Part shown: one piece after another, positions 10,700 through 60,100 of the stretch
How the letters are laid out: every line of letters starts with the position of its first letter
Position numbering within the stretch: position 1 is the stretch's first letter
Origin: Vitrella brassicaformis CCMP3155
Lineage: Eukaryota; Protista; Chromerida
Length of the DNA stretch: 64,000 nt
Assembly: GCA_001179505.1 (NCBI GenBank)
Contig: CDMY01000336.1
Span: forward strand, 372,001-436,000
Reading direction: 5' to 3'
The notes under the pieces: generated by a model
The model's input: the letters and a program-made list of their open reading frames with translations, nothing else
What the model was told of the DNA's origin: nothing
Databases searched by the model: none
Program-made: the position numbers and the translations under genes

Positions 10700-11782
10700 A
10701 GTCGCCATAATGCTCGTCCCTGCATCCATCCCATCCATCAGTCAGTCAGTCCGTCAGCATGCCTTAGCATGCCTTGCCTTGCTCGTCGACATCGATCGCA
10801 TCTATCCACACATGAATGAATGAAGCCCCACACGCCCTCCCTCCCCTGCCCTCCCCTCTCGACTTCCCATCCCATCCACACGTACACATTCCACCTCAAC
10901 ACATGATGGGCTTGGCCTTGTCGGTCACAGGCCCCTCATGCCGCCGTTGTCGAGCCAGGGCTTGTTCAGTTCATGCGCACCTTGGGGAAGCGGCGGAATG
11001 AATGGCATGCCGTCCTGCCTGCACACAACACAAACAGAGGGAGAGAGAGGGTTCCGTGATCCACACACCGACCGTTTCTCTCCTCGCCCTCCTCGCTGAT
11101 TGGATTGCTGGCGGCTTGCCTTGCCTGTTTGGGTGTGGTGTGCCATCCATGTATGGCGGTGACGCTCTCGATCGATGAGCATTGATGCCGATGGTCTTTC
11201 ATGCCAGAGGGGAAATCGTGGGGGTTGAACAGAATGTCAGGCACCAGACCCGACTCCTGCACACCCCCAACATACACACACATGGAAGGAAGACACACAC
11301 ATCCATCAATATGCCCACCACCGTGCCTGTCCCTCCCCCTCTCTCCATGCTCTCACTCACGGTGAGTGAATGGCATATCTTCGTGTGTGTGGCCAGAGTC
11401 GGCTGAGGATGGGATGCCCTTCTGCCCATGGCATGGCGCGACGAGAACGAACTTGTCGCCGGCCCACAATGGGGTCGCGGTTGCACCGCAGCTTGAGCAG
11501 CACCCTCTCGGCGACCTGTGAGGTCTGCTTGCGGTATGCGGCCACGTCAGGTGGGCTGATGCGGTTGGTTGATGCGCTCACGAAGGCGTCCTCCTCGTCG
11601 TTGCGGATGTTTTCGGCGCGCTTCTCATCCTCACTGTCAGTCAGAGGTGTCGGCATTTAGTTCCGGGTCGCTTCGGGCACGTTGAGTTGTTTGCCCCTCT
11701 TGCGCTTGCGCTGTTCTACTCCACGCAGCGCCTTTACAGAGTCGATCTGACCACACGCAGACAGACAGACAGACAGACAGAC

Positions 11783-11814
<32 letters not shown>

Positions 11815-12712
11815 GACAGTGCACAGCACAGGTGTGTCTGTGGGTGTGGGTGTGTCTGTGCCCACCTGGGCGATTGGTTGTGGTCGCTGAAGGGCGTGAG
11901 TGAGGCCAGGCCATGATGGACAGATGGCATGGCCATTCGACGGCTTTTACTCATCTCCACGTGTGTGTACTGTACTTGACGGGCGACTTCTCGTACAGTT
12001 TGTCGAACTCGTCGTGCAGCCAGCCACACGCTCCGCTCCCAGCCGGCCGGCTCCTTGGGCCGCATCGCTTCTCATCCTCATTCACTCACTGTCAGTCAGT
12101 CAGAGGTGTCGACTCGACATCTAGTTCCTTCCGGGCCGCTCGGTCCTCCCCCTCAGCGCGTTTGTTCTTCTGCCGCTCTCTGCGGGCCTGACGCTCCTCC
12201 TTAGCCTTACTTGCGAATGACTGGCCGGCCGCCTTGATCTCCTGGATCTTGATTGACGTCCTGCTGGCTGGTTGGCGCTGGATGATGAACAAATACGTAC
12301 AAGGATAGTAGAACCTGCACACAACGAAAAGGGGGACACGACAGACACATGGCCAACCCCGCCTCCGCCTCCCATCACGCACACCACACCCTCACCCGCC
12401 ACCCACTCGACTCACCCGCAATTCTGCCCGATAGATAGCGACGATCTCCATCCATGTGTTCGGGCAGCCCAACCAGCGAAGCCGAGTACCTTCCTGCGAC
12501 ATTCTCAGCGACAGAGACACCACACCCGCTCCAGCAGCTTAGCTCCATCTGGAGGCGGCCGATGATGCATGCTATCTATCGGCCGTCCAGGACAGGATGA
12601 TGTGCATCGCACCCACAGGCCAGGCAGCGCAGCCCCCAGGGCGGCGCCTCGTTGGCAGACGTCATCAGGCAGGCACCCGAGACAGACGTGTCAGTCAGCA
12701 CCTTGGCCAGTC
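10700..12712 (-). pseudogene. POLR1B: RNA polymerase I second-largest subunit (RPA2/RPA135) pseudogene fragment, intron-containing, disrupted by many 4-5 nt tandem duplications
   Basis: After removing tandem duplications the minus strand reads [107 protein letters not shown], GKAA and QDGMPFRRF. ILSRLWP and PDILFNPH are the Pol I (not Pol II/III) signatures. In-frame stops, frameshifts and large internal deletions are present. The downstream end near 10700 is approximate. Confidence 0.9.
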
Positions 12713-12906
12713 GGTGGGAAGTGAAGGCCCCCAGATGTTGGGGCGCTCGTCTGCCAGACAGACAGACAGACAGATACAATCAATGCAAAGGGGCAATGCA
12801 GTCAATGTGGGTCTGTCTGTCTGTATGTTCGTGCGTGTTGGTGGGTATGCTATCTTCCCACCACATATGGATGCGTCTTGTGTGAGGTGCAGGAGAAGGC
12901 TGTCGG

Positions 12907-15629
12907 TTACTGGCGTCTGCGGTTGCCATTTCTGTGGACAAGTAAGTAGTGAGTGACACACATAGACAGACAGACAGACAATCGGCTGATGTGTGAAGAG
13001 CCCAATGTGTGTGTGTGTGTGTGTGTGGGCTTGCTTACGGTCTGTACTGGAGGTGGTGGTTGATGAGCCGATTTGCCACCTCGGCGGTGGTGGGTGGTCG
13101 AGTCGGACTGGGGGCCATCCCTAGCTCCCATACCTTGAAAATCTCGTACTCCTCCAGCCGCTCCTCATAGGACAGGAGGGGAGGGGGAGGCGCGTCTCGG
13201 CATGTCAGCCTGCGGTTGGGAGCGGGCGGCGCGTTGGGGTCTCTCTGGAGGATCGTGACCCCGCCGTACACCGGCTTGGCACCGCCGCCCCCTGGGTTGC
13301 CGACTGGTGGACTCGCCGCCGCACAGCTCCCCTTCGGCACCCACTTCTGCCGCCCCTTGGTCCCAGCCTGAGAGGGTGCCGCAGCGTCGCCTTGCTCTTT
13401 GCGCACCTCCTTGGCTACAGCGGCTCCCCCCGACACCACCTGACGCACGACCTTGGGCACCAGCCGGCTCCCCTGCCCCTCTGCCCCACCCTCCCCTGGC
13501 CACTTATCGCCCTCATGCGCCACTGTCACATGCGGCGGCCCGCCAGTCCTCTTGCAGGCAGCCGTCGCCTTATTCCCTTCGGGCTTGGCCTTGCCGGCAG
13601 CCGTCGCCTTATTCCCTTCGGGCTTGGCCTTGCCGGCCGTGCCTGGGGGCTGCTTGGCGGCCGTCACGCTGGCCGTCTTGGTCTTGGGCTGCGGTGGCGT
13701 GGACTTGGCGCTTTGTTTGGCTGCAGGCTTGGCCTTTGCCGGCGGAGGCTTCGGGTGGTGGGCATCCGAGGCTGAATGAAACAAAAGGAAGGAAAAGGCA
13801 GACGAACGACAGAAATGATTTCTCAGGCAGGTGTCACTCGGGTGTGTGTTGTGTGCTTCCACCGCACCAGATGTCCCCTCCGTGGTCTCGGTGGTATGCG
13901 CCTCCTCGGGCGATTCCGCCGCGGCCCGCCCTGCCCCAGCCTCGTCCAGCACTGCTGCGGCTGCAGCTACCGCGACAGGCACCTTCTCACCACCACCACC
14001 ACCACCGGGCGCCTTGCCGTCTGAGGGCGCTTCCTGGGGGAATGGCGAGGCCGACGGGAGAGGGGAGTCCGCAGCTGTAGAAGGACTCACTGGCTCCCTT
14101 TCCTCTGACACACCATATGACACACGCAAAGAGATACATAGATAGATGTGATCTGAGCGCAGCGCAGATGCGATGCCGCCCTCCCCCTTATTCTCCCAGA
14201 AATGATTTCTCAGGCAGGTGTCACTCGGGTGTGTGTTGTGTGCTTCCACCGCACCAGATGTCACCTCCGTGGTCTCGGTGGTATGCGCCTCCTCGGGCGA
14301 TTCCGCCGCGGCCCGCCATGCCCCAGCCTCGTCCAGCACTGCTGCCGCTGTAGCTACCGCGACAGGCACCTTCTCACCACCACCACCACCACCGGGCGCC
14401 TTGCCGTCTGAGGGCGCTTCCTGGGGGAATGGCGAGGCCGACGGGAGAGGGGAGTCCGCAGCTGTAGAAGGACTCACTGGCTCCCTTTCCTCTGACACAC
14501 CATATGNNNNNNNNNNNNNNNNNNNNNNNNNNNNNNNNNNNNNNNNNNNNNNNNNNNNNNNNNNNNNNNNNNNNNNNNNNNNNNNNNNNNNNNNNNNNNN
14601 NNNNNNNNNNNNNNNNNNNNNNNNNNNNNNNNNNNNNNNNNNNNNNNNNNNNNNNNNNNNNNNNNNNNNNNNNNNNNNNNNNNNNNNNNNNNNNNNNNNN
14701 NNNNNNNNNNNNNNNNNNNNNNNNNNNNNNNNNNNNNNNNNNNNNNNNNNNNNNNNNNNNNNNNNNNNNNNNNNNNNNNNNNNNNNNNNNNNNNNNNNNN
14801 NNNNNNGTAGTTTATCGTCGCTGACCAGCAGGGTGCAGCCTCATGTATTCCTTGAGTCGTGTGGTGGCCTCGTCGCGGTCGAGCTGGGCCTGGTAGAGCG
14901 CACTGCCCTCCTTCAACAGCTTCTCCTCGAGCAACTTGTACTGTACGCAGACAGACAGACAGACAGACCCATAGATAGATAGATGTGTGCCCGCAGGGAC
15001 CCGGGAGGTAATATAATCAATCGGTGTGTGTGTGGGTGGGTGGATGAACGAATGGCTTACTTGTTCTTGCATTTCCTGCAGCCTCTCCTCCAGCCGGATG
15101 GCCTCCTGCTCGTAGTGCCGGGCCTTGGCCAACATGTCATCCGCATGCTGAGAACCAAACACTGCAGCCAGACAGCCAGCGAAGGAAGCATAGCATACAG
15201 ACAGAGCACTCACTCATTCCCTCATTCCCTCATTCCCTCTCTCTCTCGTCGGGCTGACTGCGTGGTGCGCTTACCGCTATTGTTGGGAAGGATCGCCATG
15301 ATGACCTGCCCCTCCTCGATGCGGTCAGTGGATGCACTCGACGGGGCAGTGTGGTCCTGCCCGTGGGCCTTGGGGTGCACCTTAGTGCAGCGATAAAGAG
15401 CGATTTGGTCGGCGGCTATGGGGGTGCCCAGCTTGGCCTCCCTGAAGAACCCGCTGAAGTATTCCGCCTGAACTCAATGCGTAAGCGTGCCGTTTTTGAT
15501 GACTTCTTTGCTGTCTGTCGTCCGTCTGTCTATGTGGCTGCCCTCCCTTCTGCTTACCGCGTGTTCGACGGTGCATGAGTGCAGCTTCAGGTCGGTGGCA
15601 TGCAGCCCAGCACACAGCTTGATGGGCAT
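12907..15629 (-). CDS. Lineage-specific protein, paralog A: small N-terminal domain, coiled coil, low-complexity region and C-terminal SUZ-like motif; spans a gap
   Basis: MPIKLCAGLHATDLKLHSCTVEHA/AEYFSGFF... spliced in consistent phases; coiled coil (EQEAIRLEERLQEMQEQ); VTILQRDP...LSYEERLEEYE resembles the SUZ consensus. Confidence 0.6.
13812..14506 (-). repeat. Tandem duplication (unit about 390 bp) of the EEREPVSP exon with flanking intron halves
   Basis: Two near-identical copies differing at a few sites; junction aatcatttCTGggagaat with ctg microhomology; only one copy is present in the right-arm paralog. Confidence 0.8.
14507..14806. other. Assembly gap (300 N)
   Basis: Run of N. Confidence 1.
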
Positions 15630-15867
15630 GCCGCTCAGAACGGGGTGATACACCCGCAGTGCACCGATTCGGTTCGCCCCGATGTGCGTGCAGTGCGCTT
15701 GGCTCAACGAATTCACAGCGATGTGAAACAACCACGGGAAACCAACTTGAGAAGTTAAGCGCTCCTGAAACTGATGGCTGAACCAACTTAACAACTTAAG
15801 CGCAAGCAAAACTGAAGCTGATCTCGCACAGATTCGGTCCCTCCTTTTTTTCATCTCCGGAAACCAC

Positions 15868-21816: not shown

Positions 21817-24800
21817 ATGGCGGACGCGCTGCGTGAATTCATTGATGGCATCTCCAGCGACATATCTATGTATCTGAACCCCTCCACGCCGGCCTCCCTG
21901 CCGCCGCTCGATGTCGACGAACAGTCCGCTGTTGTGCTTTCGCAGCTGAGAGGACTGCTGGTCTATCAAACGTAAGCCGTGGACCGACAAACGGCCGATG
22001 GCTGTCAGATCTGTCTGTGTCTTTGTGTGGTGGATATGCATGTGGCAGTGGGTGTGTGGGCCCGTGCCTGGATCGTTGGGCGTCTGTGATTGAGGATTTT
22101 GGGATGGGCCGGAGCCTCTTTACAGATACGCAGCTGAAAGGTGATCGAGGACGGGTGTATGATTGCTGGCTGCATTTGTGAAGGTATTTTGGATGAATAT
22201 ATGCCTGACGTTGTTTGTGTCTGTCTGCAGAGCTCAAGACGGACCCGTATGTGCATCGGAGGCAAAGGAGGAGGAGCTCACAGGATGTGGTACACATAAC
22301 CACATAACATTGCACACATAGGCCCTTTGGACGCGATATTTATGCTGCCCATGCCCATGCCCTTGTCTGTCTGCAGAGTGAAGCGTTCGGGGCCCCCCCA
22401 CACTCCGCTTCAATCAAGTAAGGAACCCCACATCAATGCTACAAGGCTGCTTTGTGATAGTGATAGTGTATGTCTCACGTCAGCTTCCCCGAGCCCCCAA
22501 TGGAGCACCTCCCCCTGAGGCCACACAATGAGACAACCGCCGACACCAAAATCGCCAGCTCGACACCTGTGAGGTTCTCGAGCCTGTTTGAGAGCGGCAA
22601 CCTCAAGTATGTGGTGTGCACTGACGCGGATGGCCCCTGTACGGAGTATGACCTCGTGCTTGACGAGGATGCCAACACAAAGGGGCACACACAGTGGTTC
22701 TACTTCTGCGTCGCAAACATGCACAAAGACACCACTATCAGGCTCAACATTGTCAATATGGTGGGTGGGGGATGCCAAGAAGCACCTTATTGTGTGTGTC
22801 ATATGTGCGTGTGTGTGTCTTCAGAGGAAGCCCCGTTCTCTGTATGAGGTGGGCATGCAGCCGATGGTCTTCTCAGAGCGAGCTGCCGGGCGAGTGCCTC
22901 TCACGCCATACACCACTGGCAGCAAAGCACCACACCCGCCGTCTGTTGCCCCTGAGGATCGACAGACAATGTGGCTGCCCGAGGGACACCGGATATCCTA
23001 CCAAGTCAACACCGTCCGACGGAGGCCCAGAACGGCGACAAACGAGACAGCGGCTGACGATGGTGCCGGTGATGCAGCAGATGAGGATGCGGGCCGGCCA
23101 GCGAAGCGGAGCAAGGAGTTCTACTACACCGTGACTTTCCACTACACCTTCCTGCACGACCAAGACTGCGCGTTCTTTGCCTACAGCGTGCCGCACACGT
23201 ATTCGATGCTGCGGTCGACGATCGCGTCTCTGACTTCCAACCCTGCCACGAGTGCGCATGTGCGGAGGAAGGCCGTGTGCAGCACGCTGGCCGGGTGTGC
23301 TCTCGACATGCTCAAGATAACAAACTTCAAAAGCGATGACAAGTAGGGAGACACACACAGAGAGGCGGGGAGAGACATGACATACGGCATGGCATAGTGT
23401 CTTTTTCTCTCTGTGTGTGTGCCTGTGTGGGCGTGCAGTGCATACGAGAAGCGTGTGGTGGTGATATCATCGCGTGTGCATCCAGGGGAGACGAATGCGA
23501 GTTGGATGATGCACGGGCTGCTGGTCTTCCTCCTCTCCAACTCACCCGAGGCCGTCACACTCAGGGACCGGCTGTGCTTCCACATATACCCGATGCTCAA
23601 CCCTGATGGCGTCATCACAGGCAACTACAGATGCTCCCTCGCAGGTCAACCAGTCCGCCAGCAGTTTCTCGAGTCGAGATATGCACAGACTGCCCATCCA
23701 TTGTGTCAAGATTGCATGTCTCTGCAGGTGTGGACCTCAATCGTCAGTACCTGTCGCCCCATCCCCACTTTCACCCCACCATAGCCCATTTCAAGCAGGC
23801 GCTGGAGGCTTTGATGACGCCCATGTCCAAGCCTTCAGCCACAGGGGATGTCCAGTCATGGCGGACACCACTGGTGGCGTCGCAGTCGGGAAGTCCTGAG
23901 GCACACAACGGCGACGGCGTATCTGCGGGGGGGGATGGCGCTGGGAATGAAGGAGAGGGGCCGCCCAAGCTGGCACTCTTCGTGGTGAGAGGAGAGCACA
24001 AGAGTGAGACACACACGCCGTGGGCGGGCCAGATTCATGCTGAGTGAGACATGTATGTGTCAGGATTTGCACGGCCATTCGCGCAAGACCGGCATCTTCA
24101 CATACGGCTGCTCGCCCAACGATCCCCAGAAAGACGCATCAGAGTCCGCACACTCACTGATATATCTACACAAATGAGAAACTCTGCATGCCCTCACTCC
24201 TCTGTCGTCAGGTACTTCCAAGCCCGTGTGCTGCCCAAGCTGCTGGCTGTGGTATGCCCCTCCTTCTACTATCCGTTTTGCAAGTACCGAGTCGAGAGGT
24301 CCAAAAGGGGCAGCGGGCGGGTGACGGCCTACTTGGACGTCGGCGTGCAGTTCGCCTACACGCTGGAGGCATCATTCTACGCCCCAGTGCCCCCGAGTCA
24401 GCGCGTGGGCGGCAACAAGGCGGGTCTGACCAAGGACAAGAAGGAGAGTGGTGGCGATGTGGCGGTGCAGTTCAATCAGAGGTCGCTCATCTCGGTGGGG
24501 GTGGCCATCGCCAAATCACTCATTCTCTTTTTCAGGTGTGTCACACCTGCCACACACATGGACGCTGGATGTGTGTCTTATGCGTGTGTGCATGGCATGT
24601 GATGGATGGGATGGCTTGCATGGCCATGGACAGGCTGGGTTCCCATCTGACTCGTGTGGTCAAGAGGCGAGCGAGCTCCTCCTCTGAGCCGTCAGCCTCA
24701 TCGGCCACTGCAACCCCTGCCGCATCTGCTGCTGCTGGCACTGCTGCAGCATTTGCACCGCCAACCTTCCGCCCAATTGCGGGAGGTGCTGCTGATGGAG

Positions 24801-26392
24801 AGGGTGGCAGTGACCGTATGAGCGAGGCTGAGATCGATGAGGACTATATGGCTGAGAGGGACGACCGGAGCGACGCAGGCGAAGGAGAAGGAGATGAGGG
24901 CAGCGAGGAGGCGGACGAGGGAGACGATGACATGAGTGAGGAGGGGGAGGAAGGGCAGGACGAAGACATGAGCGGGGAGGAAGAGGAGGACGACGATATG
25001 GCAGACTCGGACGCTGATGCCGGTGAAGGAGGACGGGCACACACGCCCACATTCATGCCGCTGCCAGCACCGGACGGCACCGCTGCCGATGAGACGCAAC
25101 AATCGCCATTGGTGCCAATCGCCAGCATGGACATCGAGCGGACCCTTCTGCTTTTGCGTGAGGCTCCTCGCGAGCTGGCCGCCACCAGCAGCCCATCCAG
25201 TCTCATGCTCGGCATAGATGACATTGTCGACATGGCCGGAGGCGCTGTGGACACGATTCAGTCTCTAGAGGCAGCTCTCCACCTGGCTGAGGCTGCCGAG
25301 AACGCCGACACGCTTCTCGAGGCCGTGAGTGACATGGACGAGTTCAGCGATCGAGACGACGCATCGCAGCAGGCCTCATCTGTGGGCTCGGACAGCAACC
25401 CGTCTGAAGACAATCTCGCACAGGTTGAGCGGCTGAAGAGGTCCGAGAGTCTACTCAAGCGCAAGCAGCGGTGGTACGCCAAGCACACGCGACGGGGGAG
25501 CGGAGACAAGGGCAGGAAGAAACTGAAGCGCAGAGGGAGGAAACCTCGGCGAAAGAAACGCAAGGAGCAGCGGACACGGAGCGCCCCACCGAGGCAACCG
25601 GAACCCCAAAGGGAGCGAGTGTCGGTTGCATTTGGACGGACCATTCAGCCCGCCAAGCCGTCCTCCCCACCTCGAGATCGCATCATCACATCACCCCCCA
25701 CCGATCGCAGCGGTGCCCTGAAAAGGCCGCAGCTCCCATCAGCCTTTGCGGCAGCAGCAGTCACGAGTGACACGGACGCCACCCGGCAGACACCCTCATT
25801 CCTGCCGCCCCTCCCACCACCAAGACGCCCGGTGTTGCGCAGCGACGCCAGGATCGCGGGGCTGGTGCCCGACAGCCTGCCACTGGCGGTGAGTGCCACC
25901 TCAACATCTCGGGGCGGCCGGCTTGTTCGAGGGGGGACGCCGCTGAGACAGAGGAGGATGGACAGGGAGACCGCTGTTGCTGCTGCTGGGGATGCGACCA
26001 CTGATGTGGAGAGTCCGCTCGTGCGCATCCCGACGCCCCCGTCTCTGACGCAGTCGAGGCGGGACAGCGGCAACACCGGCTACGAGCAGCCTGGTGGTCT
26101 GTTCGGCATACAGCAGCAGAGCGCCCACCACATACACACCCGGTCGCAGCCAAATCTGCAGCAGCTGGAGACGGCACTCAACACCATGTTCCAACCAAGG
26201 CCACCAATCATTGCCGGCAGGCAGCCGCAGCAGCCGTCATTGGCTCGTCAGCACCAGCCGAAGGGTGCGTACAGGGGTCCTGTTGAGGCCTACAGGGGCG
26301 GTCGGGGGGAGGACACAGTCGCGCTGGGGAGAGCGTCGCTGCCAAGACACCTGAGACAGCAGCTGGAGAAGATATTGGGCAAAGATAAATAG
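21817..26392 (+). CDS. Cytosolic carboxypeptidase (M14D, AGBL/CCP tubulin deglutamylase) with a long acidic low-complexity C-terminus
   Basis: [25 protein letters not shown] (HxxE zinc site), [32 protein letters not shown] and YTLEASF. Confidence 0.92.
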
Positions 26393-26900
26393 ATAGGTAT
26401 AGAGGCCGAGACAGAGAGACAGACAGGCATGTATTGGTGTAGAGGGGTACATGTGTGTGTGTGTGAATGCGCATGTGCCTTTGGGTTATGCATATATACG
26501 TCTGTGAAGCAGATTTGACGATTGACGTGTGAGCATCTTGGGGATGGATGATTTCATCACATTCTCGCCTCGTGCTGAGCTTGTTTGGTGACACATCCTC
26601 TGTGTGAGGGGGACGGGTGGTGTGCATGGAGTTGGACAAGAGGTTTGTGAGCATGAAATTACCTTGTGGTCAGTCAGGACGCAGGCCTATATCTGTATGT
26701 CTTTCATTCATTTAGTTGGCCATCGTCCATCAGATCGTACGATATGTAGACAAGAAACGAGTGAATGTATGCCTAGACCATCGACATAGACAGACAGACA
26801 GACAGACGGACAGCCTTTTGGCCTGCATCCCCCCTCCCTCCCTCCTTGCAAGCCACCGCACACAAACCACCACCTCCTCCGACCCCCCCCACACACCCCA

Positions 26901-28119
26901 CTACTTGAATTTCTTCTTTTCTTTTAGCGGTTTGAGTATCTGGAACGAGCACATGAGTGTCTCGTCGACGCTCATCATCGCGCCGGCGTTGTCGAACTCG
27001 CCGCAGTAGTTGGGTGCGGAGAAGAGGGTCACCAGCTGCCGCTTAGCCGCGAACTCGTACCCATCCTCGACCACCTGGTGCGCCCGGCACACCAGGTCCA
27101 TGTCGTGCTTTCTCAGGAAGTTCTGCACTATGTCGGGCCCGTAGGTGTACGACACGCCCCGGTCGTTCTCCTGCCAGCCGTTGGTCTCCTTGTCGGGATC
27201 GGCCCACACCATGTCGCACAGCAGGCCTGCATCGGGGACGTCTGTAGGTCGGACGATCCGGCGGATCTGCTCCATGTTGTTGAGCTCGGGCGAGAGGCCG
27301 GCGTGCACGCAGAAGATCTTCTCGTCGATGATGGCTGCGAATGGCATGCAGTTGAAGCAGTCGGTGAAGGCCTTCCACAGCTTGACGTTGTAGCGCCGCT
27401 TGCACTCGTCGTAGAACCCGTAGATCCGGTTGATCGACGCGATCTCGTGGTTGCCGCGCAACAGAAAGAAATTCTACAGACAGACACAGAGAGACACAAC
27501 ACAAACACCGGCAGACAGACAGTCACCCCTCTGTGTGCTGTGCCGCCACACATCGACATGTATGCCCCTTCCTTCTTTTGGTGTCTGTGTGTACCTCTGG
27601 GAATTTGATCTTGTATGAGAGCAGGAGGCAGATTGTCTCGAGCGACTGTTTGCCGCGGTCGACGTAGTCCCCGAGGAAGAGGTAGTTGGCCTCCGGGGGG
27701 AAGCCCCCGTACTCGAACAGCCGCAACAGGTCATAGTACTGACCGTGGATGTCGCCGCAGATCTTGATTGGCGCCTCCAGCTCCAGCAACGCCGGCTGGG
27801 ACAGAAACACCTCGCGAGCCTTCGTGAGCAACCCACGCACCTCAACCTCTGATGCGGCAATCAACATGTACGCGCAAGGAGAAAGCGTCGGTCGGTCAGG
27901 CAACACCTCGCGCACAACCGTCTCTGGTGTGTGTGGGCACCTGTCAGCTGAACGGGCTTGAAGTTCCCTGGCCTCGCTCCACGCACCTCCAACTTTTCAC
28001 TGATCAACGCAGACAGAAAGGAAGAAATTGAAACCACCATCCAGAGGGGCCCTTTCCGTGTCAGCATTTGGTGTGTTGCCTCACATGACTGCGTCGACGT
28101 CCACATCGGGGGCTGCCAT
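26901..28119 (-). CDS. PP1: Serine/threonine protein phosphatase PP1 catalytic subunit (divergent paralog)
   Basis: [29 protein letters not shown] and [11 protein letters not shown] motifs; four exons. Confidence 0.96.
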
Positions 28120-32749: not shown

Positions 32750-34639
32750 ATGACCATCAAGGGCTTTCACAAGCTGTTCGATGATGGACAGAGCTGCTGG
32801 CAGAACAAGACCGCCAAGGTACGCACACCGACTGTGGCGCCCTTGCAAACAACAGAGAAAGGGCAAACAAGGGAGGGCATGATCAAAACAGCATGGTTGT
32901 GCCTGTGTGCAGGACTATGCCGGTCAGAAGGTTGCCATCGATTTTAGCATCCTGCTCTACCAGGTGAGCCGCGACGAGTCAGACCATTCACTGGTTTCTT
33001 GTACATATTTGTATCTTGCCTGCCTCAGGTGTCGACGGTTGAGTCCCACGTGCCGCCCATGCGTACACTGCTGTTCAAGCTGTTGAAGATCCTGGAGGCC
33101 GGCATCATCCCCGTGATCGTCTTCGACGGCGCACCACCACGGCAGAAGCTGCGCACCAAGGGCGGCAGCAGCCTATCCAACCGTGACGCCGATAGACCGC
33201 TGGCCGCCTCGCCCCGACTCACACTCGGTGCCCCACGGCGGTCAAATTTCCCATCGCCACCACGCCCGCCACCCCCTCCCCCTCCCCCTCCCCCACCGCG
33301 CGCATTCCCCGCTCGCACGTGTGGCGAAGACAGCGATGACGACGAGTACGCAATCGTCACCATCGGCGGGGGGCAGACATTGCCACCTGCCGACACACAG
33401 CACATCGCGAGCACCCCTCCCGTGCCCCCAGGTCCGATGACCAGCCAGCCATCGCCATCGCCATCACCATCGTCCCCCCGCTCGTTCGCGCGTGAGAGTG
33501 AGGGCGACATCAAACGGCTGCTGGACATGCTGGGCATCCCGTGGGTGGCGGGGCCGGGTGAGGCCGACGCCACGTGCGCCATCCTTGTCCAGACGGGCAA
33601 GTGCGATGTCGCGGCGTCTGAGGACTATGACGTCATGGTGTTCGGTGCATCTAGGCTCGTGAGGGGGTTGTTGCAGTTCAGCGCTGCCGATAAGAAGCGG
33701 CGGACGTCGCAGAAGATTGCCCGGGTGACGGGTGGCGGGGGCGGGGGCGTGACGGGGGTGCGGGAGTTTAGCCTGCCTAGTTTGTTGGCGCACCAGCAGC
33801 TCACTCGCGAGCAGCTGGTGGATGTTTCGCTGCTCATGGGCTGCGACTACTATCCGGGCGTCAGCTCGCTCGGGCCCGTCAAGGCATCGCAGCTTATTAG
33901 GTCAGAGAAACGCAACGAAACTCCCAGGCCTTTGAATGCATGTGTATATGCGTGTATGTATGTGTGTGTGTGTGTTGGTTGGTTTATACAGGCAGCATGG
34001 GTCGATCGAGCACCTGCCGTCTAACATCAGGAGTCGGCTGCCCCGTCCCCGTGAGCTGTACGAGCTGCGGCAGCTGTTCCTCGCCCCACCCAACACACAG
34101 CAGCTGCGCCAGTCGTCCCGTAGCTACCACCTGGGCCCCCTGCCGGTCAGCAGCGACGCGCAGCAACAGCTGTATAGCTTCCTGATGGGCGAGAAACACG
34201 TATTCAACCAGAGGGGACACTTCGGTAGGTGGGCAGGCCACAGACTCCCTCCCTCTCACCCATCCGCACCCCCAACCGCACCGCCCATGCCATGGATGCT
34301 TTCGTGTGTTCAGAGAGCGTGGTCAATCGTATCGAGAAGCTGGCCGATGCGCGTCGGCAGCCCACCCAGCTGACCCTCAACTCCTTCTTCACGCCATCCC
34401 CCAAACCCAAGCCACAGCCCGGGCAGCGGTCGGCGCGCATGACGATCGGACCCACCCCACACCCCACTGCCCAACCCGCGGCAGCACCACCAGCACATGT
34501 GTTGCCGCAGAAGCGTGGGAGGGGCAACAGAGTGGAGAAGCCGCCCAGGAAGGCGGCACGAGGCGGCGATGTGGGTGGTGCAGGTGCAGGTGGTGTGGGG
34601 ATTGTGAGGGGTGGGCGGGTAAGGGGAGGGCGACGATAG
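32750..34639 (+). CDS. XPG/Rad2-family 5' nuclease, FEN1-like
   Basis: MTIKGF, VAIDFS, VFDG, EADATC, ASEDYD and GCDY acidic catalytic set; H3TH motif LGPVKASQLIR; PIP-box-like QLTLNSFF. Confidence 0.85.
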
Positions 34640-57116: not shown

Positions 57117-60100
57117 ATGCGACCACAATGCGAGCTCAAACCCGAGGAGATGCGGCGCGTTCACACAGCCACCCACACTCTTTGTGGAGCTTTGCTGCAC
57201 TCTGCCCCTGCACCATCTCGCTCCCAATTCATTCGATCTTCCCATCGGTGCTCATCTGCCCAGCATCGCAGGGCAGCAGCAGCAGCACTGCAGCCACGAA
57301 GGCACCTGTCCACGGCCAGCAGCCCAGCACCCAACGCTCCAACACAGGAGGCTGCCATCTCCACACAAGCACAAGCAGATGAGGTCGAGGCGGACGCGCC
57401 AAAGCGACGAGATGAAGATGTGCAAGATGAGGACGATGCGGCCGCTGCAGAGGTGCTGGGCGACGCTCAAGGGGGCGAGGAGGAGGGCATTCATTCTGCC
57501 GGGTGGGGTGGGAGGCAAACGTTTGAGAACAACGAAATGCTGGCTCGGCTCACTCGGACGGTTGCTACAATGTGTGTATGCTCAGATTGCGCGTTGTTGT
57601 CGACTATCCGTTGGTCTTGCCGGACACGAGCCCTCTGGAGGGCCTTGACGACAAATGGCGGGACCAGCTGGCCTATGCGCCGCTGAAGGAGGCGCTGCGC
57701 ATCGCGCTGCAGGTTGGTGTGTCGCCGGATGCTGATGTGAGGGCTGAGTGGCACCTGTGTGGCGAGAGGCTCAAGGATGTGGCCCTTGACGAGACGGCGG
57801 CCTTCTTTGTGGCCTACCTCATGAGCTACATCGGATACACTGACCCGCAGCTCTGCTTTCAGGTAGCCAAGAGTGAGTCCACAGGATGGCACCACACCAC
57901 AGCCACCAAGGAGGGAAGGCAGCATCAGCATCTGGTGGTGGGCGGGTCATCTGGCTTGATTGTCTCGTGTGCCGGCTGCGTGTGTACAGGTGGTTGAGCG
58001 GCTGGAGGCCCGCTACAATTCGACATCCCTCGACCCAATACCGCACCCTGTAGACCAGACGCACTCGCAAAACACAAAACATACACACACAGACGCAGAG
58101 CTGGCGGAAAGGTCTCTCTCTGGTGTGGTGCCCTGTCTGTGTGTCAGCTGGCGGGACAGTTTGGCGCCAACGGTTCGTTCCGCAGTCTGGTGGACACCAT
58201 GCCGATAGCCATCAAAACCAAACTGCTGCTGGTACGGTACCTAGAAGTGACTGATTGACTGATACAAAGTGGTCTGCCTGCCGTCTTCGTGTGTTGTGTG
58301 TGCAGTGTGACGTGTTTCCCCGGGAGACCGGCCTGCAGGAAATCAAAACGGTGCGCACCTGGCCTGTCTGTCTTATCGTAAATGGAGAGGTGCGTGTACG
58401 CTCCTCCTCCTTCTGTCTGTCTGTCTGTCTGTCTGTCAGGCTCCCCCCGTGAAGCTTCCAACGTGGCAAACAATGGACCTCGTCGAGTGGGCAACGCACT
58501 CACATGCATTGCAACCAACATACATACATACACGTGAGCGTGTGTGTTGGTTGCGCCCGGCGCTTGCCTGCCTGCAGGATGGAGGATTGGGAGGCGAAGC
58601 AGCCCCGTGTGCGACGAATGCGGCACGTGCAGGTCACATCCACACCCACGGCCGCCACCAGGCGCCTCAAGAGCATGCTCGCACTGCAACTCAGGGAGGT
58701 GAGCTCGGCGACACGGCGGGTCCACACTACACTCACTCACTCACTGACTCACTCACTCACAAGCAGGGAGGGAGAGAAGTGCGCATTTGTGTGTGTGCTG
58801 TGCTGTGCTGTGCTGTGCAGGCCATCCCAGGTGCATCCATTGAGAAAATCGCACAGATCGCAACGATTTTCTGGTTGGTAGCACACACAAAGAATCAACA
58901 ATATATACGGTGGCATGGCATTGACCGACCATTGCTTGCTTAATGCGCTTCATTCTTCAGGAACAGCGACCGGCACTACACGGGCAGCTTGCAGGAAGAC
59001 ACACTCGAGCTGCTCTCAAAGAGGTCAGGGCAGATACATAGATAGATAGAAAGAAAGACAGAGAGAGAGAGACGTGTTCCCCCTTCTGTTGCCAATTGTG
59101 TGTTGTTTCTTCCAGGTTGTTGAGCATCCCGTGTGACCTCATCTCGCCCTACGTGCTGACCCTCACATCATCACTAAGACACGCCTCATGCCCCTCCGCC
59201 GCACCACTGTGGCGCCACCTGGCCGACGCCACTCTCCACCCACAGTCATTCGACGTCCACGACCAGGTGCTGCCCTTTGGCTTTCCCATCTGGCCCGGCA
59301 TGTCGGCCGTCCCCATGATGGCTGTCGACCAGTTCGGGGCGCTCAAGGCCGCCAGTGCCATGAAGACTGCGGCTGCCTCCAGGGGCATGGGTCGGCGGGG
59401 TGAGTGGGACGAGGCCACACTCCCATCGCCATTCTCGGACCAGGAGTGGAAGCTGCACGTCTACACCAAGTAAGTACAAACAAACATAGATAAACAGAGA
59501 CCGGAGCAAAAACAGAGACCGTAGTGTATCATGGTAGCTGCTCTGCACGAGTATCTGGGATTCGTTCAGGCTCTTGACAAACTTCTGCACGGCGGCCCAC
59601 ATGCCAAGTGAGATACATACAGGTCACGAGGCGCACACCTGACAGACGGACCCTTACATGCGCATTGCTGTGCGGTCTTCTTCTGCAGGGAGTCCCGATG
59701 TGTTCAACGTTCTCAGCGACCACCTGTCAACGGCCCTCAACGAGACGCTGCATGAGCTGCCGCACGACCGTATCGACCCGGCCACCCTCCCCATTGGCCT
59801 GGGCGAGATGGCCGACATGGCCGACGGCGTTGTTCAGTCGGGGTGGTACCACCCCAACATACTCAGGGGAGTGGAGGCCATCACCATGAGGACACTGTCC
59901 AAAGAGGCCGACTTCGAGGACCTAGAGTCTGCGGATGCGACACTCGCCTCATTACGCGGCAGTCCCGCCGACTTGTGTCGACTCTTCAACGCATTCGCTG
60001 TCTATCGATACAACCAGGTACGGTACGGTACGGTACGCAACTAAAGGAGAGCAAAGCACCGTTGCCCAGGTAGATCCATCTGTGTGTGTTTGTCTGTGTC

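Follow-up and report, generated by a model that had tools for sequence, protein, structure and literature searches.

An apparent RPA2 pseudogene in Vitrella brassicaformis decays mainly by tandem duplications of four or five nucleotides

How does a gene copy come apart once selection no longer maintains it? The question is raised by a 64,000-nucleotide (nt) stretch of DNA from the chromerid Vitrella brassicaformis CCMP3155 (assembly GCA_001179505.1, contig CDMY01000336.1, positions 372,001 to 436,000 of the forward strand), hereafter called the window, which contains a broken copy of RPA2, a subunit gene of RNA polymerase I (Pol I). An earlier note, made from the letters of the window alone, had described this copy as a pseudogene riddled with tandem duplications of 4-5 nt, and had proposed that a size-specific duplication mechanism rivals point mutation in unconstrained DNA of this lineage. 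An example is the catalytic-loop motif that once read [13 protein letters not shown] (GDKF motif), where four such duplications lie next to one another. Three of these are exact (GGATG twice at 11407-16, CATGG twice at 11427-36 and GAAC twice at 11445-52), while the fourth is imperfect (GCCG/GCCC at 11457-64), and all four can be read in the sequence as they had been described. By alignment, none of them occurs in the functional parent gene, and a sister relic on the same contig lacks three and has the remaining one in a 4-nt version. We here compare the relic with its parent, its sister and the rest of the genome, and weigh the processes that may have produced it.

The parent gene was found by searching the whole assembly (72,700,666 bp in 1064 contigs) at the DNA level with window positions 10700-12712, which matched C596:18386-21131 in pieces of 68-85% identity; the functional gene at C596:18229-21132 was used as the reference for all relic-to-parent alignments. 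The exons of this gene are open and its motifs intact, including ...[30 protein letters not shown] and [11 protein letters not shown]. For two of the exons, the best matches among solved structures are the Pol I subunits RPA2/RPA135 of fission yeast, human and budding yeast, with scores exceeding those of the Pol II and Pol III subunits by 12-36 bits, and the parent is therefore identified as RPA2. Both blastn and global alignment to C596 place the RPA2 homology in the window at 10902-12898 on the minus strand. This revises the extent of 10700-12712 given in the earlier note, considering that positions 10700-10901 are not RPA2, and instead hold a repeat common to C512 and the flank of the sister relic.

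Within these limits, the homology falls into four collinear blocks, all on the minus strand (Table 1), the first of which contains three former exons and two introns from the Rpb2_6 domain region. About 780 bp of the parent are absent between the first two blocks, and the relic also has a 27-nt deletion, an internal rearrangement and dozens of frameshifts. The parent segment that is present as a displaced second copy recurs at about 12055-12145, there with extra microduplications, and the 84-bp repeat in the filler between the blocks has matches of 92-93% identity at C770:216249 and C770:173033. The alignment to the parent crosses the two introns of the first block as well as other non-coding stretches. 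As the introns have been kept, the relic was copied at the level of DNA and is no retrocopy. Stops occur throughout all three frames, while an intact parent exists elsewhere. Judged by these features, window 10902-12898 appears to be a non-functional, intron-retaining, rearranged DNA duplicate of the intact C596 gene, in agreement with the pseudogene first proposed. The relic resembles any unprocessed (duplicated) pseudogene in its retained introns, intact parent, lost frame, truncation and rearrangement; in other words, the relic itself is ordinary, and only its mode of decay is unusual.

Table 1. Features of the RPA2 relic in the window, and TDP1-family matches in the assembly.
Feature	Coordinates	Strand	Parent segment or content	Basis
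RPA2 relic block 1	10902..11603	(-)	C596:20494-21132	blastn, global alignment
Former catalytic-loop motif	11407..11465	(-)	four adjacent 4-5-nt duplications	
Displaced second copy of a parent segment	11590..11671	(-)	C596:19234-19311	blastn and direct comparison of the copies
Non-RPA2 filler	11672..11798	(.)	84-bp repeat, then (CAGA)n/(AG)n array	
RPA2 relic block 2	11799..12065	(-)	C596:19491-19714	alignment
RPA2 relic block 3	12099..12271	(-)	C596:19096-19265	alignment
RPA2 relic block 4	12286..12898	(-)	C596:18229-18744; passes 12712, the end first proposed	
TDP1-family matches	C571:104557-119057		two in tandem	
TDP1-family match	C308:124174-126627			
TDP1-family match	C508:40272-42033			
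TDP1-family match	C1019:63456-63818			
TDP1-family match	C307:175-327			
TDP1-family match	C145:150-299			

To describe this mode of decay, the relic was aligned to its parent with a raised gap-opening cost, since standard gap costs split gaps of 4-5 nt into pieces summing to 4 or 5. Over 1470 aligned bases, 116 substitutions were counted. The relic carries 50 extra segments, comprising 22 of 4 nt, 14 of 5 nt, nine of 8-12 nt and one of 33 nt, with just four of 1-3 nt, which confirms the 4-5-nt pattern first described. Three of the nine segments of 8-12 nt were parsed by eye: the 9-nt segments at 11019, 11138 and 12034 are compound, each consisting of an adjacent 4+5 pair, such as GTGTG twice followed by CCAT twice. 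Segments present only in the parent number 11 (1, 1, 1, 1, 2, 3, 4, 6, 12, 21 and 27 nt), which leaves the relic with 285 nt gained and 79 nt lost. In 17 of the 4-5-nt segments, the extra bases repeat their neighbours exactly (8 of 23 with four bases and 9 of 14 with five), whereas simulated random inserts did so in 2% of trials for 4 nt and 0.8% for 5 nt.

The same pattern is found in the former exons, where the parent is constrained, with 19 substitutions and 11 extra segments, equal to 12 duplications, over 426 aligned bases. When the relic-specific segments are removed, the translation is identical to that of the parent at 132 of 154 codons, including the strings MTIGMLI and WPHEDMPFT, and the codons that still differ are mostly due to three deletions. 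This agrees with the earlier note, in which deleting one copy of each duplication restored strings of the protein. Decay of the relic is dominated by newly arisen tandem duplications, which within the 4-5-nt class measure exactly 4 nt in about 60% and exactly 5 nt in about 40% of cases; duplications of 1-3 nt are almost absent, small deletions are few, and there is a net insertion bias. Across the relic and the testable unconstrained pairs described below, we found 0.3-0.6 duplications per base substitution. The statement that duplication rivals point mutation consequently holds for the number of bases changed, in which duplication exceeds substitution, but not fully for the number of events, which approaches that of substitutions without equalling it.

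The junctions of the duplications were analyzed for traces of the process that formed them. Among 31 exact events supported by the alignment, 27 sit in non-repetitive sequence, and only four extend an existing array, that is, occur at the pre-existing tandem repeat by which microsatellite slippage is recognized. Extra periodic junction letters numbering 0, 1, 2 and 3 were observed in 44%, 41%, 11% and 4% of cases, compared to 56%, 28%, 10% and 4% expected if homology is not required, and 12 of the 27 de novo events lack even a single homologous letter at the junction. Run lengths over the whole window (645 of length 8, 282 of 9, 129 of 10 and 77 of 11) likewise fit the absence of a homology requirement. 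No target motif or dyad symmetry was found around the 645 four-base and 226 five-base duplications of the window, and no position within 10 nt of them reaches 0.05 bit of information. The duplicated units are also close to background in composition, at about 45% AT by hand count against 41%. The duplications therefore need neither junction microhomology nor a target motif. Their random-level junction homology, lack of motif and background composition speak against an origin by slippage, by microhomology or by transposons with site specificity, and the junction features fit the blunt joining of completely filled-in staggered ends.

The sister relic (C336:363030-363807), which has 90% identity and lies about 19 kb upstream of the window copy, allowed events to be assigned to branches by a three-way comparison with the parent covering about 500 nt. 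The window copy has 6 private substitutions and 3 private duplications of 4-5 nt, the sister has 13 and 2, and the shared stem has 11 substitutions and about 11 duplications. Considering that private events are present in both copies, in addition to those of the stem, the process must have been active both before and after the relic was itself duplicated. The functional parent, too, has gained one TCCC duplication, within an intron. The comparison also brought out sites that changed more than once. From one and the same stretch of the parent, the window relic (at about 11511) has lost 27 nt and its sister (at about C336:363710) 26 nt. The two deletions overlap but are not the same, each is bordered by 2-3 nt of microhomology, and they are independent events at one place. 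At 11103-11112 and 11407-11416, the window has a 5-nt duplication and the sister a 4-nt version of each, reflecting either repeated hits at the site or a later 1-nt change.

The duplications were then sought in independent data. Logan contigs of three studies (X1, X3 and X4) cover 10812-11132, 11313-11506, 11484-11748 and 11855-12658 with no differences and no gaps, and they also show the private GAAC and CAGG duplications of the sister relic as a second form. A marine-sediment metagenome from 2025 (X11) carries the same relic duplications, for example at 10996-11204, with one differing letter and no gap. These independent contigs, all built from short-read data, reproduce the duplications, which are therefore no assembly artefact. 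With the exons of the functional RPA2 intact and free of the insertions, two doubts that the earlier note had itself raised are answered. Two further contigs of the X11 metagenome were considered as possible polymorphisms and rejected. One seemingly lacks the GTTCA duplication at 10964, but is most likely a chimera of relic and parent in the assembly graph, because the two share 32 identical bases at this point and because 26 letters of the contig do not fall on the relic beyond 11000; the other (11238-11405), in which duplications likewise seemed to be missing, is best read as a mosaic of relic and parent and was not counted. Contigs near-identical to the Vitrella locus occur in several of the 2025 marine-sediment metagenomes (X11 and X13-X15), which shows that marine sediment harbours a very close relative of the cultured strain.

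To see how far the signature extends, exact two-copy tandem repeats of primitive units were tallied, and their numbers were set against those expected from Markov simulation. In the window, units of k = 3 show no excess under a third-order model, whereas 540 repeats were observed against about 200 expected for k = 4, 195 against about 65 for k = 5, and 52 against 15 for k = 6, together with 94 tetranucleotide arrays of three or more copies against about one expected. Fifteen pieces of other contigs (67 kb) gave 1236 against 834 for k = 3 under a second-order model, 451 against 223 for k = 4, 173 against 73 for k = 5 and 62 against 21 for k = 6, as well as 78 such arrays. Each of 14 other nuclear contigs has an excess, which taken together is 2.0-fold for k = 4 and 2.4-fold for k = 5. 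No 4-5-nt duplication excess and no tetranucleotide arrays were found on the plastid-like contig C467, of which positions 22951-27072 (45% GC, with an open rpoB-type frame of 1082 amino acids, plastid-like or bacterial-type) serve as an internal negative control. Five control metagenome contigs of eukaryotes (41.6 kb), whose RPA2 genes are only distant relatives at 40-55% identity, gave 134 against 138 for k = 4 and 46 against 41 for k = 5, with no arrays. The genome-wide 4-5-nt peak anticipated in the earlier note is thus present in the roughly 130 kb examined by this statistic, and the signature is accompanied by very abundant tetranucleotide arrays on all other nuclear contigs sampled.

Other paralogous pairs in and near the window were compared in the same way. 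Window 58275-58889 and C336:364029-364660 differ by 20 substitutions and 7 exact 4-5-nt duplications, and other unconstrained pairs show the same kind of event, such that the size-specific process holds in the relic and in every unconstrained pair that could be tested. Pairs overlapping long open frames (the inverted repeat of the window and the C158 copy) have indels mostly of 3, 6, 9 and 12 nt; with indels in multiples of three, such coding-constrained pairs are uninformative as a gauge of neutral decay and were set aside. The density of 4-5-nt repeats is 6-12 per kb in long open frames, 13 per kb on average in the window and 27 per kb in the relic, and bins of the window without known duplicates reach 22 per kb.

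Among known systems, duplications that are microhomology-mediated (in fission yeast) or due to rad27/FEN1 deficiency (in budding yeast) form where short direct repeats are already in place, and their lengths range widely. These are also spontaneous tandem duplications in unique sequence, but the Vitrella events differ from them in their chance-level junction homology and in their length, fixed at 4-5 nt. A closer likeness is found in the signature of topoisomerase II (Top2) and non-homologous end joining (NHEJ), known from yeast top2-F1025Y,R1128G, from Top2 overexpression and, in human tumours, as COSMIC ID17. Trapped yeast Top2 causes NHEJ-dependent de novo duplications with a mode of 4 bp, equal to the stagger between the nicks, and with about 13% of 5 bp; clean removal of Top2 by Tdp1 promotes these duplications, and the authors propose that repeats can be born in this way (bioRxiv 10.1101/2020.05.03.075358). 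The same signature, as ID17 or ID_TOP2alpha with duplications of 2-4 bp, marks TOP2A K743N tumours in humans (PMC8795545). With this signature, the Vitrella process shares non-repetitive targets, independence of microhomology, a 4-bp mode, a minority of 5-bp events and a proposed role in the origin of new repeats. The signature is known solely from mutant or overexpressed enzymes, drugs and tumours, however; it is not known to be the regular germ-line spectrum of any organism in the wild.

We therefore propose a route in which double-strand breaks with 5' overhangs of 4 nt, and sometimes 5 nt, would arise with the geometry of Top2 cleavage. The protein adduct would be cleanly removed by a TDP1-type activity, DNA polymerases of family X (Pol X) would fill in the ends completely, and Ku-dependent end joining would ligate the blunt ends, so that the bases between both nicks would be duplicated once per event. 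Ordinary slippage could later expand some of these duplications into tetranucleotide microsatellites. The assembly holds genes that would permit such a route. One eukaryotic Top2 is present, on C234, and a gyrase-like gene on C305; Ku domains were found at three loci; and two ATP-dependent ligases are present. Pol X palm domains occur at five loci (C123:97790, C91:76883, C646:288530, C33:71414 and C562:17285), and all those translated, four in number, contain the GSxRRG...GDVD catalytic motif. One of the Pol X loci (C33:71414) lies about 8 kb from a Ku-domain gene (C33:79893), and a Ku exon near-identical to that of C33 is found on C288. Most eukaryotes have one TDP1 gene. In Vitrella, matches to the TDP1 family above the Pfam cut-off occur at at least five separate loci (Table 1), and this multiplicity could bear on the clean removal of topoisomerase adducts. 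The presence of these genes is permissive, and the Top2/NHEJ mechanism is one that we infer. Overall, a dead RPA2 duplicate decaying by 4-5-nt duplications, formed through a staggered-break fill-in route, is the explanation that we favour, with moderate confidence; within it, Top2 is the most likely source of the duplications, although we would put this somewhat short of an even chance.

Several observations weigh against this reading. The substitution that causes hypercleavage in human (K743N) and yeast (K720N) is absent: in an ungapped alignment of a Vitrella Top2 exon with TOP2A 713-749 and yeast Top2 690-727, the equivalent position is the normal lysine. The size distribution differs as well, given that 2-3-nt events are essentially absent and 5-nt events make up 30-40% in Vitrella, while the known Top2 signature consists of 2-4-bp duplications, among which those of 2 bp and 3 bp are common. 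Compared to an ID17-like size profile (2-4 bp, mode 4, none above the 4-bp stagger), Vitrella shares the mode and departs in the other respects. The duplicated units are not AT-rich either, whereas AT is preferred in yeast. In addition, the repeat density of the relic is about twice the window mean, constrained paralogue pairs have mostly in-frame indels, and the regions examined amount to about 200 kb of a 72.7-Mb genome. A bolder reading would be that, instead of ordinary Top2 accidents, a lineage-specific enzyme or pathway cuts with a stagger of 4 to 5 nt and always fills in completely. Candidates would be a new dimeric nuclease or a Top2 whose geometry has changed, acting together with the several TDP1-like and Pol X genes; we consider this reading unlikely. 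If true, Vitrella would be a natural insertional mutator with a genome growing by microduplication, in which redundant genes are killed mainly by frameshifting duplications and tetranucleotide microsatellites are born in the same manner.

The duplications could also arise without any staggered break, if an error-prone Pol X, Pol theta or a replicative enzyme, at work in replication or in the repair of gaps, realigned its primer 4-5 nt back and recopied the template. In primates and flies, indels are much rarer than substitutions, and deletions predominate. Short insertions in these animals are mostly tandem duplications, ascribed to replication errors, with lengths decaying roughly geometrically from 1 bp (PMC2374710). 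There as in Vitrella, the inserted bases copy adjacent sequence (PMC2374710), the Vitrella genome has several Pol X genes, and its tetranucleotide arrays have clearly been expanded by slippage. What separates Vitrella from these animals is the sharp 4-5-nt mode, the rate of 0.3-0.6 per substitution and the 285 nt gained against 79 nt lost. Realignment moreover depends on pairing at the terminus, whereas junction homology is nil in 12 of 27 events, its distribution fits random expectation and the run lengths agree; and the sharp lower bound at 4 nt, with no excess at 1-3 nt, contrasts with the roughly geometric decay of slippage elsewhere. We therefore regard a polymerase-based origin as rather improbable. 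Integrases, offered in the earlier note beside Top2, fare worse. Cut-and-paste transposons and integrase-type enzymes create target-site duplications of 4-5 bp, the usual size for integrases of the long terminal repeat (LTR) type, and the Vitrella duplications, equally short, direct and of fixed length, could accordingly be footprints left where an element departed or aborted its insertion. At least 64 matches to integrase (rve) do occur in the assembly, and many of these fall within long open frames. At none of the roughly 54 relic sites, however, was an element or an end remnant found, with nothing between the copies, and there is no target motif (less than 0.05 bit everywhere). Insertion and excision would have to approach the rate of point mutation in a genome whose transposable elements total only 1.5 Mb, with non-excising class I elements outweighing class II (PMC4501334). 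Of the two sources put forward, Top2 is thus favoured over an integrase, and we find mobile-element footprints very unlikely.

It might further be asked whether the relic was targeted because it is a duplicate, by a directed process that marks or inactivates redundant copies with the logic of repeat-induced point mutation (RIP), but by microduplication. The doubled repeat density of the relic would suit such a process, as would the fact that the cases so far are all duplicated gene fragments. The window mean is lowered, however, by coding sequence, in which such events are purged; bins without known duplicates reach 22 per kb; an intron of the functional parent has gained its TCCC duplication; and introns and other non-coding DNA on 14 contigs bear the signature. 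With the signature present in introns and in unique non-coding DNA, a process aimed at duplicated DNA is not needed, and we consider one highly improbable, although the relic may be enriched twofold. Finally, the duplications could be a sequencing or assembly artefact, or belong to a functional gene whose insertions are removed from RNA or somatic DNA. Apart from the data being short-read only, nothing was found in support of this. The contigs of three studies and an environmental metagenome agree with the duplications, the exons of the functional copy are free of them, and the relic is missing large parts of a gene of which an intact parent exists, leaving this explanation next to no probability.

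The surroundings of the relic were noted in passing. Window 12709-15779 belongs to a family of local segmental duplicates of 93-95% identity, together with 63155-60627 (inverted), C336:442306-442999 and C336:364701-365281; more distant relatives lie on C158 and C33, and the C336 region is a patchwork of duplicated gene fragments. Two direct repeats are young, namely 13810-14119/14197-14506 (310 bp, 98.7% identity) and 43655-44125/44832-45302 (471 bp, 99.4% identity). Window 32999-34024 (+) holds an XPG-I/flap-endonuclease-like gene, annotated as a Vitrella protein of 516 amino acids, of which the best relatives in a database search are archaeal-type flap endonuclease-1 proteins (31-43% identity) and not eukaryotic FEN1.

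To our knowledge, neutral DNA in almost all organisms studied decays by substitutions and by small indels biased toward deletion. In this free-living relative of the malaria and Toxoplasma parasites, duplications of 4-5 nt instead occur at a third to half of the rate of substitutions, and DNA is gained on balance. The process is unusual in three respects, namely its sharp 4-5-nt mode, its high frequency compared to substitutions and its bias toward insertion. We found no published description of this microduplication habit in the open-licence literature, and the genome paper is silent on it (PMC4501334). The process is a new, natural form of a known and experimentally defined signature, and its mechanism in Vitrella would be the fill-in route outlined above. 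For work on this genome, the consequences are practical: short false introns in gene models can mask young pseudogenes, and divergence will be misjudged by aligners that use standard gap costs. If the signature is genome-wide, Vitrella would offer a natural counterpart of the mutant-topoisomerase II signature so far known only from yeast and a few human tumours; it would also show microsatellites in the course of being born, and would depart from the general deletion bias.

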